DNA from: Bugula neritina
Taxonomy: Eukaryota > Animalia > Bryozoa
Reading direction: 5' to 3'
Assembly: GCA_964035545.1 (NCBI GenBank)
Contig: OZ037765.1
Location: 9,062,698-9,126,697 of the forward strand
Length of the DNA stretch: 64,000 bases
How positions within the stretch are numbered: the stretch's first letter is position 1; the number at the start of each line of letters is the position of its first letter. Of this stretch, positions 5,750 to 52,720 are shown piece after piece. Position numbers and translations under genes: made by a program. Under the pieces are notes generated by a model, which did not search any database, was not told where the DNA came from, and saw nothing but the letters and a program-made list of their open reading frames with translations.

Positions 5750-6850
5750 TAATTCATAGGTAACAATAATTCTGACCATCACAATAGCAAGGAGTACAGC
5801 TCCAATAATCAGTAACCAAACTTAATATCGGTACCTAGTGTTATTATCATTTTATGGTCAGTTTCACTTTAGGTTTATAATCATAATGCCTATACTCATA
5901 CTGAATATTGTCTGCGTCAATAAAATCTGAGTTAGTAGTTACAATTAGTATTACTATTTGATCAGTATGAGTATGGTTCTCCTGAATCAAAATCATAACC
6001 ATAATTATAATCATAACGATAGCCATACTCATAGAGACATCGTTATCATGGTTGTAAAACAGAAGCTAAATGCAATTGTCATTTTAATTTCGTACTCAAA
6101 CACTTACAGTGATATTGATACTCACAATCACAGTAATAGTTGTAACCATACTGATGAAAGTGATAATCATAATGGTACTCATTAACTAAGAGTAAGTGAA
6201 TACAATTACAAGTAAAGGCACTACTAAAAGTAAATTATTGTAAATCCCATTCATACTCATAGTAATGCTGATAGTCATCTACTGACAATTGATAGTTGAA
6301 GTTGATAGTGTCACTGTCGGTGATACTTATACTCTTAGTCATACTACACAATAATTATAATAATAATACATGCTCTGATAGTGATGCTAATAGCAAAATT
6401 CAAACTGGATGCAAATGCAATACTAATAGTAATAGTATTACTGTAATACTAATACAGTATTACTAATATTAATAATAATACTAATAGTAATACTAATACT
6501 GGTAGTAATACTAATAGTAATAGTAAGAGTTATAATTACAAGTTATTTTAATTTACTTTTAGTTATAGTATAATTATTGTTATTAGTATTACTATTACTA
6601 CTATATCTATTGGTATTTACTAGGCTCTTTCACTTTCAGTATTTGTATTCATAACTCATAATCATTATATAAATCATTATGCTTAAGTTTGACTGTATTC
6701 ACATTCATATTCACTCATACCATAGTGATAATCATAGTCATGACTCGTGACTCATGAGTAATGAAATTCAAATTGGATATTCATATTAACTCAGTTTCAA
6801 TGGCTGCAGTACTAGTTAAATTTCAATTTGATGATCTCAAGACTCGGAGA
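5750..6850. repeat. Periodic low-complexity island upstream of the RB1CC1 coding exons
   Basis: Degenerate AATAGT/AATACT/CATACT/GATAGT hexamer arrays with a core at about 6420-6610. Confidence 0.85.
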
Positions 6851-8275
6851 TGAATATCAAATTCATAAAATTAAATATTAATATTATTTTAAATATAATA
6901 TTAATTGAAATAATTAAATTTAATAAAGTATCAATTGTTTATTTTCAACATAAATATAATAAATATAAGTACATAATGATAAATAATGCATTGTACATTA
7001 GTATGATGCAATTCGTCGCACGTTTTATGTGCGTAAACCGTGAAATGCAATATTTTGTCTTTGTTTTTGACTACTACTCCACCTAGACCTACGAGCAGTG
7101 AGTTACCTAACGAATTGCATCAAATTTAGTATTTACAGCTACAGACACTATCAGCTGGTTTTGTTGACAAAAGCATTAGCCCCTCTTTTGTTAGAGAGCA
7201 CAGGTCCCATGCAAATATAGAGTTATCTTTTCTCCACATATTTAAATCTCGGCAGTCATGATAGTTTGCTATCATGAATATCACGATTTTTATTAGGCCT
7301 ACATGCAAAGCTAATTCACCAAACATTACGTGTAAATAAAAACTCATGATGTAAAAAAACCAAGTAAAATGTACTATGCATGAAATTAGATATATTTTGA
7401 CTTCATTAATTATAACCTTTTGTACACTGTGGGGGGTTTTATTTATTTTCTAAAGTTAGTATATTTTATTGTTTTAGTTTTAAAAAGTAAGTGTGTAGGG
7501 ACAAATGCTGCATGGCAGGATGCCTATATTAATATAATATTGTGATTCACTTAATGAAGGGTGTAGTGAACAAGGCTTTGAGTTGAGCATTTACTCTTCA
7601 CTGATGTCCTTTATTAAGTTTTATTCTAACATACATTAGTTGATCTCATTGACTTCTATTGACATCATCAAGACTACAATTATTACAATTCAAACTTACA
7701 TGATCAGGATAAACATAAATAAACAATATGAAAACAAAAAACAGTTGTAATTTACACAAAAAAGAAACAATATAATTAATGTAAATAACTTACTTATTTT
7801 GCTCTCTTAAAATTACACTAGTCCACTAGCACCAACTATTGCCAAGTGCCAGAGGTCTTTTAGTTAGCACTGGCTGTGCTGTAGAAAGCTTTTCTTAGTA
7901 CGTTTTATTATAGCTAAAATAGCTTAGCAAAGTAGCGCTAATTTCACTGCAAAGGGTGAGTGGATGGAGGACACAGATGCAGGCCACAACTCAACCTTTT
8001 GCCTAATGCCAATAGTTTATTTTTTCACAAAACTTCAACAATTATTTGGGCAATACAGTTTAGATTGCCTGCATCCCTTAACAAAAGCAAATTTTCCTAT
8101 TTCAGTTCTTGAGTTGTACTGATTCATCTAACAAAGCTATCAGTAGAAAGCTATTGCAAAAGCTTTCACAAAAAGCTTTTATCAAACAATACTTTTTTAA
8201 AGCTGGAAGAAGCTCCTGCAACACGTAAGGCCCCCCTGTTGATTAAATTAGATCTACTATTCAATCAAAAAATAG

Positions 8276-8355
8276 CAATAGAATATAACAAAAAATTAAC
8301 AGCAACCAAAAACATAACAATAGAATATAACAAAAACTTAACAGTAACCAAAAAA
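8276..8355 (+). repeat. Tandem duplication of a 42-bp unit
   Basis: CAATAGAATATAACAAAAA(A/C)TTAACAG(C/T)AACCAAAAA occurs twice in tandem. Confidence 0.8.
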
Positions 8356-9461
8356 ACTATTTGATTCATCGGATATATTATTGCAAACCTCACTGTTAAA
8401 TTTTGTGTAATATGTTTATTTGGTCTGGCACCGAGCAGAGCCTATAAGCGCACCTAATCGACCAGGACAAGCAATGAAAGGTTCTGCACTGCATGAATAA
8501 TCACGGCCTCTTTCCACCTTATACAATCCTTCACCGTTGAGCCAACTCTGAATATTTTACCTTTACTATGGGGGCTTGGGAATTGTAACTTGAAACAACA
8601 TACATAGCTAAAGTTTTTGCTTAAAGCTGTATAATCAATGTAAAAGTTGTACACTACAAAATTTTTACAACATTAGGTCAAAATATTTAAGTCGTATTAT
8701 AGTTTAGGTATAAAAATAATCTTTAACAAAATTAGAACCTTTTAAACTTATACATGTTGCAAGAGTTCATACTCTACCTATTCCCTGTATCTCACAGCAA
8801 CGCATGTAGCTTAGTTACGCTTTAGACAGTGTAGACTGTAGAGTATATCAGAATTCAGTTAGAAAAAATTATATAGCCACAGCATTTACTGGTTTACTGA
8901 GGCCTAGAACAGTATAAGGTAAAAAGGTGAAATGGCCACATGCATATTGTACAGTGTGCATGTTTGTTTGTTTGTATTTTCATCAATGAGTACAAGCATA
9001 CTATACCCGTGATGTGTGAGTATTATACAATATCATGGCATTTAATTATAAATCACAAAGTTGCTACTGCAAATTAGAAATAAATTGTTGTAGAAGGAAG
9101 TTGTTGTAAGCATACCCTGCAATCCCCATAAAGTAACAAACATTTTTCCAAATGTCCAACGTTTTCTTTTTATATACACGAATGTCCAAATTCAGACGGC
9201 TTTATCAATACTAATGTATCACAGTTGATTCATGTAACAGAAGGATATACATTTTCAAGTTCAGTATATTTGGAGTCCGATACAACACTTTTATCATGAA
9301 AACCATAATATTTAAAGCATCATTAGGGTATAAAGGCATTAAAAGTTATACACTGAAAACATGCCACTGATAATTCTAATTAAACACAACTGCAAATTTA
9401 TAATAATAGAGAGTTGTTTTAATATGTTTAATATATTAGTTAATTCTATTGTTTTCACAAA

Positions 9462-50831: not shown

Positions 50832-50938
50832 TATATATATATATATATATATATATATATATATATATATATATATATATATATATATATATATATATAT
50901 ATATATATATATATATATATATATATATATATATATAT
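50832..50938. repeat. (TA)n microsatellite, about 53 units, within an AT-rich tract between gcm and OGA
   Basis: Perfect TA run seen directly. Confidence 0.97.
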
Positions 50939-51939
50939 TTAAAACTATATAGTGTATTATATTTTATGTATTATATAGTATGTATTATATATTATGTACA
51001 ATATTTTATGTATAATATTATATATCTATATAATTTATATTATGCATTAATGAAGAAATAATATTGGACTCTATGGAAGAATAGAGCTTGTAATGTTGAA
51101 AAGGATTGTCCTGCCTATAATGAAAAATGGAAATATATTCTACACTATGCATTTGCAAGTATTTCATATCACTTGACTAAAATCTTTCCTACTATTTATA
51201 AAGTCTTATCTTTAATGTGATTTTTCCTAACAGTTCAATTGTGTGAGCTTTCATTTTGTTGTTTAAATATTGCTGTCTAGATGGAAGGTAACTTGGTATG
51301 TTTCCATCCTATTTGCTTAACTGCTTAAATTAGCAACCTAGAACATAACAACGCTAATTACTCCACTCTATTCAAGATCTCAGTTCTCATAATATATAAT
51401 ATGTGTGAATGACCAGTGAATTATACCTGCAAGGTGTGTATGTTATCTTGAACTTATTTGCATAGTTAAGTAAGAAACATAATTTTTTTAGTATGTCCGC
51501 TGATGGATGAATAGAATTATTTTACTGGCACTGAATATTAGCATTTTTTGAGCATCATTTGCAATGGGTGTAACGCAATTAACTAACGATGCAGCCTTAA
51601 ACAGATTTGATATTTAGAAATTTGTGTCAATAATAACTTCTTTAAAAATGCTGCTATGTAGCATATTATTCTACATAAGTTAAGTGTATGTATACTTTGC
51701 CTTTTTATTTTCTCTACCCTATCCACTAAGGTTATGTAACTTCGCCTTATATTATAATATTATTATTATTATTTAATTTAAACGTTCGTCTTCTGATAGG
51801 GGACATAACTCGAATTAGCAATTAGTTTTGCTGATGAGCAAATGATCTCTCGAAATAAGCTTTGGTATAAGTATTTAAATGCTGAAAGACGTCAATGCAT
51901 CCAGGTTGTTGCAAATGAAATATAATTTGTTTGCTAATG

Positions 51940-52720
51940 CCCAATAGTAATAGTAATGTACTAATACAGTATTACTAATACTAATAGTAATAGTAATACT
52001 AATAGTAATAGTGAACACAAACAGTATTAGTATTAGACAGTACGTATTCGAGTATTACTATTAGTATTAGTATTACTATTACTATTACTAATATTAGTAA
52101 TAGTATAAGTAGTACTAATACTAATAGTAATAGTAAATGTAATACACTGTATTTAATACTAATGTCTAATACTAATACTAATAGTAATAGTAATACTAAT
52201 AGTAATAGTGATAGTTATAGTAATAGTAAATATAATACTAATAGTAATAGTTTATTAGTAATAGTAATACTAATAGTAATACTAATAGTAAATGTAATAC
52301 TATTAGTATTACTATTACTATTACAGTAAATGTAATACTATTAGTATTAGACTTAGACTTAGAGTTAGAGTTAGTATAAGTATTACCATTGGCATTGCAT
52401 TAGTAATGGTAATACTAATACTATAGTAATACTAATAGTAATACTAATAGTAATAGTAATGGCATTACTATTACTATTAGTATTACTATTAGTATTAGAC
52501 TTAGTAATACTAATAGTATTAGTATTACTATTAGCAGTATTAGTATTACTTTAAGTTTGATACTCACAGTTACTGTTAGTGTCACACTCACACTGAAGCC
52601 CATTATGATTATGATCATCACTGGTCTCGCTATCAGTGTCACTATGATGATCATGATGACTATCACTTACCATTATGAGTATGAATATGACTGAGCCTCT
52701 GCCTGCAGCTAAAAGTAAAA
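51940..52720. repeat. Periodic low-complexity island in the inferred 5'UTR intron of OGA
   Basis: Alternating-orientation blocks of AATAGT/AATACT and ACTATT/AGTATT, plus TTAGACTTAGACTTAGAGTTAGAG and ATGAGTATGA, upstream of the acceptor at about 53173. Confidence 0.9.

Follow-up and report, generated by a model that had tools for sequence, protein, structure and literature searches.

In vertebrates, CpG islands mark the 5' ends of housekeeping genes and reach into the first intron. In plants, a 5' microsatellite gradient and telo-boxes place simple repeats just behind start sites, notably those of housekeeping genes. Cryptic simple sequence, for its part, arises from slippage. The periodic A/T clusters (PATCs) of C. 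elegans form a non-coding, periodic and alignment-free class tied to germline-active genes (PMC4947018); a 2026 preprint derives them from Helitron minisatellites, by transcription-coupled mutational remodelling of repeats followed by co-option for chromatin, and does not mention bryozoans (bioRxiv 10.64898/2026.08.08.743475). Here we describe islands of a degenerate six-base lattice that lie behind the promoters of housekeeping genes in the bryozoan Bugula neritina, beginning with a stretch of 64,000 nucleotides (contig OZ037765.1, positions 9,062,698 to 9,126,697, assembly GCA_964035545.1), hereafter the window. Like PATCs, the islands are a non-coding, periodic class without alignable copies. 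They are real and occur across the genome, a second species has them too, and the literature searched contains no description of the class or of a mechanism for it. Whether read as mutational or as selected, they are new for animals as far as that literature goes.

Seven tracts in the window had been described in an earlier note on this DNA, and an unsupervised period-6 score run over the 64 kb finds all of them at nearly the same coordinates (Table 1), with an (AT)n run as its sole extra call; 20 Markov simulations of the window gave no island. Identity at lag 6 is 0.41-0.67 in all seven tracts against 0.29 elsewhere in the window. ACT/AGT is the top trimer, enriched 2.5-fold, and AAA/TTT is down to 0.41, a depletion of A-tracts. 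Successive ACT/AGT trimers stand 6 bp apart 190 times over a flat background; the four pairings of the core are about equally frequent, and the centre of the linker is equally A or T. The repeat unit is thus A(C/G)T-NNN and nearly strand-symmetric, a formula (A-S-T-NNN) that describes the islands better than the (N-W-T-A-S-W)n vocabulary first proposed. Array orientation flips within single islands and inverted arms are present. Folding predicts long DNA hairpins in the OGA island, the strongest of the set, and a z of merely -2.4 for that of Rab32. Coding by low-complexity open reading frames (ORFs) is rejected, because no frame is free of stops and the RNA contigs leave out the Rab32 island. 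A telomeric or telo-box origin (TTAGGG-type words) is likewise ruled out, GGG/CCC being depleted to 0.17.

Six of the islands lie directly behind a CpG-retaining, promoter-like patch of a housekeeping gene. The observed/expected ratio (o/e) of CpG is about 0.72-0.75 on the promoter side, 0.27-0.4 inside the islands, where GC is 0.21-0.31, and 0.2-0.45 beyond them. Putative start sites were placed from the CpG patches and one RNA contig; RNA contigs join Rab32 exon 1 to the acceptor, which puts the island of this gene past the start and within intron 1. Because islands start behind the CpG patch and can end as far as 1 kb short of the acceptor, they track the promoter and not the intron. The order is a putative CpG-retaining promoter, a first exon if there is one, the island and then a CpG-poor gene body.

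The assignment of these six islands to the 5' ends of named genes holds. Tim8, COX5B, Rab, LIM (CRIP), ceramidase, GCM and O-GlcNAcase are backed by Pfam or a named homologue, spliced genes having been searched one exon at a time, and the Tim8 ORF is 99% identical to Bugula neritina timm8a; less firmly, a ubiquitin-like N-terminal match, together with the overall look of the sequence, points to what we take to be RB1CC1. It had also been claimed that the COX5B island begins exactly at the exon-1 donor and that in RB1CC1, Tim8, ACER and OGA the island lies upstream of an acceptor that precedes the ATG, and both statements are confirmed. For gcm the upstream DNA reaches a best score of 0.06 and holds no island, and CRIP (0.08) has none either, again as described. 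The short trace at about 31770, by contrast, had been placed at the CRIP 5' end and lies instead 1.9 kb into intron 1, as the position of the true first coding exon makes clear.

Table 1. Islands and associated features of the window, with the calls of the period-6 score.
Feature	Position	Strand	Period-6 call	Remarks
RB1CC1 island, 5' non-coding	5851-6800	-	5851-6800	ends ~1 kb before acceptor 4843; ATG 4809
CpG-retaining patch, promoter side of RB1CC1 island (putative core promoter)	7001-7200	.		CpG
COX5B intron-1 island	12280-12913	-	12301-12923	begins at exon-1 donor 12913
COX5B first coding exon	12914-13052	-		acceptor-like site ending 13097 just upstream
Tim8 sole coding exon with acceptor (17834-17833)	17553-17834	-		two different leaders at acceptor in RNA contigs
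Tim8 island, outron / 5' non-coding	18780-19346	-	18821-19346	~950 bp before acceptor
Rab32 non-coding exon 1	19513-19575	+		RNA contigs; divergent Tim8/Rab32 promoter region, between two islands
Rab32 island, intron 1 / outron	19652-20031	+	19652-20031	acceptor ~20250 takes exon 1 or spliced leader
Young 3.14-kb element	26342-29482	+		terminal inverted repeats, imperfect, of the form GTGAC...GTCAC between ATAT flanks
Weak island inside 3.14-kb element	26860-27500	+	26861-27360	begins at donor-like AG/GTAATT behind element's CpG-richer 5' end
CRIP true first coding exon	29846-29885	+		no island after it
ACER island	39247-40100	-	39247-40069	200 bp upstream of acceptor 39042; ATG 39040
CpG patch by ACER island	40100-40400			promoter side
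Region upstream of gcm GCM-domain exon	46800-50600	-		no island; negative case; true gcm start not mapped
OGA island	51940-52788	+	51898-52788	acceptor 53173, ATG 53193; hairpins z -12

The analysed assembly comprises 216 Mb, and the published draft of B. neritina 214 Mb with 25,318 predicted genes (PMC7576161). Held-out loci were called positive by a count of three-unit lattices. The lattice is present in the 5' regions of 12/19 proteasome and Sm/Lsm loci and in 0/30 homeobox loci (p 5e-7), the latter covering just 1.5 kb on each side of the homeodomain and some of the former also lacking their 5' end. In SmE, SmF and PSMB6 the island starts directly behind the first coding donor, as it does in COX5B. 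The 5' ends of broadly expressed genes are therefore marked and those of developmental genes are not, which is the positional behaviour of CpG islands. A promoter-proximal, housekeeping-biased placement, absent from developmental genes, had been proposed from the window; it survives these loci as well as the direction test in a second species described below. Scanned with a strict five-unit pattern, the genome gives 25,437 matches on each strand; about 23 loci across 0.78 Mb account for the first 100. Extrapolation yields some 6,000 loci genome-wide, a number that the true one exceeds, because the strict pattern detects only 4/7 of the window islands.

The islands extend beyond B. neritina. 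A Tim8 sequence from metagenome Ga0224501 groups with that of B. neritina against named non-bryozoans (100/99), and its source animal is probably a bryozoan. An ACT/AGT-dense tract lies 1.0-1.5 kb upstream of this gene, at a spacing mixed between 4 and 6. About 27 tracts were drawn from the Ga0224501/511 samples by pattern scan, on the assumption that they stem from the same animal. At 19 of the second-species loci, gene direction was predicted from the CpG-richer side alone; ORFs on the predicted strand behind the tracts match seven family groups of the housekeeping kind (TRAP-gamma, NIPA, C10, PX, zinc knuckle, WD40 and thymidylate kinase), against 0/48 with a family match on the opposite strand. 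The genes behind the tracts thus point away from the CpG side. Metagenome matches outside Ga0224501/511 are nearly all short isolated arrays and not islands, and two other bryozoan-clade lineages show no Tim8 island in the 1.9-10 kb of upstream sequence examined, which suggests that the trait may be patchy. The class, which had been described as lineage-specific, is not confined to B. neritina.

In position, then, the islands resemble vertebrate CpG islands; they are unlike them in being AT-rich and CpG-poor, with the CpG patch beside them, and neither their GC nor their o/e reaches the values (high GC, o/e above 0.6) that characterize a CpG island. PATCs, which protect germline expression from silencing and which the islands resemble in their proposed history, are intronic 10-bp A/T clusters matching the helical repeat, whereas the islands have a period of 6 (or 4/6), an ACT/AGT core and a place in the first kilobase only; they show no peak at lag 10/11 and, as noted, few A-tracts. 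Plant 5' repeats are near-perfect and strand-biased (CT/GA, CTT or short telomeric words), while the islands are 0.2-1.1 kb degenerate patchworks of hexamers in flipping orientation. Microsatellites have a single unit, a single orientation and a locus-specific vocabulary; here orientation flips within islands and the core is genome-wide. By their unit turnover the islands are cryptic simple sequence, yet their core is common to the whole genome and their place is tied to promoters.

This turnover was followed across haplotypes and across copies of the young mobile element that carries the seventh island. Clean indels are multiples of 6 in 18/23 island events and in 2/35 outside (Fisher p 1e-8), the whole-unit length change of microsatellites and cryptic simple sequence. 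Exchanges of a base for its complement (C<>G, A<>T) account for 43% of substitutions within islands and 20% outside, substitution classes within repeats being dependent on the alignment. Islands have diverged by 0.106, their flanks by 0.067. Young element copies gain single imperfect units (TAATAC beside TAATAG, AATATG beside AATATC); some new units are one swapped base off their neighbour, even in copies 98-100% alike, and inverted templates of 11-14 nt lie near two imperfect units.

We favour, at about an even chance of its being correct, the view that the islands are a promoter-anchored, ACT/AGT-biased footprint of slippage and template-switch mutation. The setting would be genes that are always transcribed, presumably in the germline as well, and the zone would be unconstrained DNA from about 150 to 1,100 bp behind the unmethylated core promoter. 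Slippage there would keep adding and removing whole units, and short template switches, the putative enzymatic route, would copy the opposite strand and rewrite the zone locally. The outcome would be a strand-symmetric lattice whose core A(C/G)T, an odd palindrome, alternates between ACT and AGT. Fixing the core at ACT/AGT would require, in addition, a bias that is specific to sequence, whether weak selection or a preference in lesions or nicking; later co-option for chromatin is possible. The proposal builds on the observed position, housekeeping bias, unit-wise turnover, complement-swap excess and hairpin potential. Template-switch and slippage mutation likewise yields complement swaps, perfected hairpins and unit-length indels, and in yeast template switching at quasi-palindromes depends on high transcription (PMC3820800); a further precedent is the origin given for PATCs, in which transcription reshapes repeats (bioRxiv 10.64898/2026.08.08.743475). 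Quasi-palindrome mutation is, however, known from scattered hotspots, whereas the islands are tied to promoters across the genome and share a single fixed core. A rigid code is disfavoured because the period differs between the species (6 versus mixed 4/6).

Several observations weigh against this footprint, besides the alignment dependence of the substitution classes. There is a mild strand bias, the sense strand carrying more AGT than ACT in 13/17 islands and TATGAG counting 27 versus 7 by strand. Inverted templating of a novel base is clear in just 2 of about 8 imperfect units. A toy simulation of 6-nt slippage plus micro-inversion produced period-6 lattices, but each of its 5 runs arrived at a vocabulary of its own and none at ACT/AGT, and one ACT/AGT core at thousands of loci in two species calls for an extra cause. 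As slippage and inversion gave no common core in the simulation, a sequence-specific writer or reader is needed. A mutational footprint of active promoters had been offered earlier as an alternative; polymorphism favours it as the generator, but generic slippage and inversion do not suffice for ACT/AGT.

Since slippage and template switching leave that core unexplained, a functional rival stays alive. Nucleosome phasing, a methylation boundary, protection from silencing and factor binding had been suggested earlier as possible functions. Here a bryozoan protein (for example a zinc-finger array) or the nucleosome itself would read repeated ACT/AGT on the A-tract-free lattice and so keep housekeeping genes open or unmethylated at their first nucleosomes, in the manner of CpG islands or PATCs; unit turnover would be tolerated, with motif density alone mattering. 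We regard this as a serious possibility that falls short of probable. It is encouraged by the same shared core and by the failure of the neutral simulation to reproduce it, by the sharp housekeeping bias, by the position of the islands between a CpG-retaining promoter and a CpG-poor gene body, and by a mobile element that bears an island behind a donor-like site of its own. Nevertheless, islands diverge faster than flanking introns, their period is not conserved between species and their strength varies widely. LSM8, CRIP and several proteasome loci are without an island in the DNA examined, as are the two lineages at Tim8. A bolder reading, a possibility of much the same standing, is that some bryozoans have evolved a new kind of housekeeping-promoter mark encoded in sequence. 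A process of its own, biased in sequence, would write the lattice at active germline promoters, and chromatin or one particular protein would read it; in an AT-rich genome it would do what CpG islands do elsewhere, and transposons as well as leader-headed retroelements would have captured it. If mutational, the islands are a visible genome-wide record of a promoter-confined, sequence-preferring copying error, and could help to find the enzyme and to date germline gene activity. If selected, they represent an independent way to mark the promoters of housekeeping genes in the absence of CpG islands.

The acceptors before Tim8 and Rab32 receive spliced leaders. Among the RNA contigs, one leader is found on Rab32 (X6) and Tim8 (X9) and a second on Tim8 (X6), so that two genes share a leader on their mRNAs, joined at an unpaired acceptor. 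Leaders are encoded elsewhere, with a GT donor, in about 24 genes of two families that resemble spliced-leader (SL) RNA genes and are clustered on C3 and C8 (G000 C3 31.46-31.63 Mb, L017-L022; C8 11.85-13.14 Mb, L008 and L013-L015). These genes have a leader of about 66-70 nt that ends in AAAAG/GTAAAT and folds with downstream sequence, a conserved 135-nt tail and an upstream CACCGTTT box resembling a snRNA promoter element. The arrangement is like SL trans-splicing in chaetognaths (PMC12460157), nematodes, tunicates and flatworms, with a common leader on several mRNAs and clustered multicopy donor genes that hold leader, GT donor and stem-loops. It is unlike known SL systems in leader length and in having no Rfam match, and no U-rich canonical Sm consensus was seen in the conserved part of the genes. 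No report of leader trans-splicing in Bryozoa was found in the literature searched, and a term search of the B. neritina draft-genome paper turned up neither introns nor trans-splicing (PMC7576161). Bryozoa would extend the patchy list of phyla with this process.

Because of trans-splicing, which the earlier note does not mention, some island regions are outrons; the islands are nonetheless not outron-specific, because cis-spliced first introns are filled too. It might be supposed that the islands act at the RNA level, as arrays of U1-binding or branch-point-like words with few poly(A) signals that protect the young transcript or mark outrons. Two island genes are indeed trans-spliced, AAGTAT/GAGTAT is twice as frequent on the sense strand, and AATAAA occurs at about half the intronic rate. 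GTRAGT, however, has no sense bias (7 vs 13), U1 pairing is similar on both strands, AWTAAA overall is at background level, and in COX5B, SmE, SmF and PSMB6 the island stands in an ordinary intron behind a coding first exon. We consider this explanation improbable. Under both the mutational and the selected reading, lattice and CpG patch together predict the start and direction of a gene from sequence alone, which matters here because trans-splicing erases true mRNA 5' ends and first exons are missing from public annotation, as for COX5B in L001.

The seventh island is set apart by its carrier. The 3.14-kb element is present in at least 40 copies at 96-100% over the first 509 bp, is missing from haplotype L001 and gives no Pfam match in the ORFs tested; the layout of its island mimics a host gene start. 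Host islands have no ends or flanks in common with this element or with one another, and align mutually only as lattice, at about 67-80% identity with shifting registers and in both orientations. The islands as one transposon or satellite family can accordingly be rejected, shared ends and a collinear interior being confined to the element with the 26860 island. The earlier statement that the tracts are not copies of one transposon is correct for the host islands and has to be qualified for this one, which rides a multicopy element.

Long interspersed nuclear element (LINE)-like sequences in L007, L010 and L016 (from about 1450) open with a full spliced leader and encode a PHD-finger ORF1, with an endonuclease domain in L010. 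Each sits within island-like DNA or immediately after it (n = 3), which suggests that trans-spliced LINE RNA was retrotransposed and then inserted, or survived, in islands. It is tempting to speculate that an element family brought the lattice to promoters and that its ends have since worn away, in the way that PATCs were seeded by Helitron minisatellites. Such seeding would accommodate an island travelling in a young multicopy element, a 53-bp piece of the carrier adjoining the PSMA6 island and the leader-headed LINEs; but host islands match as lattice only, without common ends or flanks, they start exactly at host donors, and the orthologous position is kept in the second species with a different period. 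We therefore judge it improbable. The 53-bp stretch (92%; L048:297-349, upstream of PSMA6 exon 2) corresponds to window 27203-27255 within the carrier island, and most of it is absent from the most divergent element copy, L094.

Between Tim8 and COX5B, window ~13255-16830 is taken up by another element, about 3.5 kb in length and bounded by long terminal inverted repeats, which is absent from L001; it holds no island, and its two tested ORFs have no Pfam match. Without it, Tim8 and COX5B stand about 1.4 kb apart on one strand, a possible operon. Non-island divergence between window and L001 is about 7%, plus several insertion polymorphisms, and the two may represent different cryptic B. neritina lineages.

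On the chromosomes, only four loci with a MutS domain and a single DNA-methylase locus came to light (G000 C1, C3, C5, C9). Loss of MSH3, for which this count of unassigned loci is no more than a lead, would let 6-nt loops evade repair. Ten small contigs (C15, C59, C66, C72, C85, C110, C114, C175, C284 and C295) have compact genes with in-frame TAA/TAG and probably derive from a co-assembled ciliate or other protist; small contigs with TAA/TAG-interrupted matches (C15, C66, C72, C85, C110 and others) were excluded as another organism. C303 carries an intronless DNA methylase, perhaps bacterial. On the minus strand of window 23900-26030, protein-like ORF pieces in shifting frames, without a Pfam match and unannotated in L001, are perhaps a decayed gene or element. 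Finally, intron 1 of ACER contains a CpG-rich inverted repeat resembling a miniature inverted-repeat transposable element (window 38410-38865).

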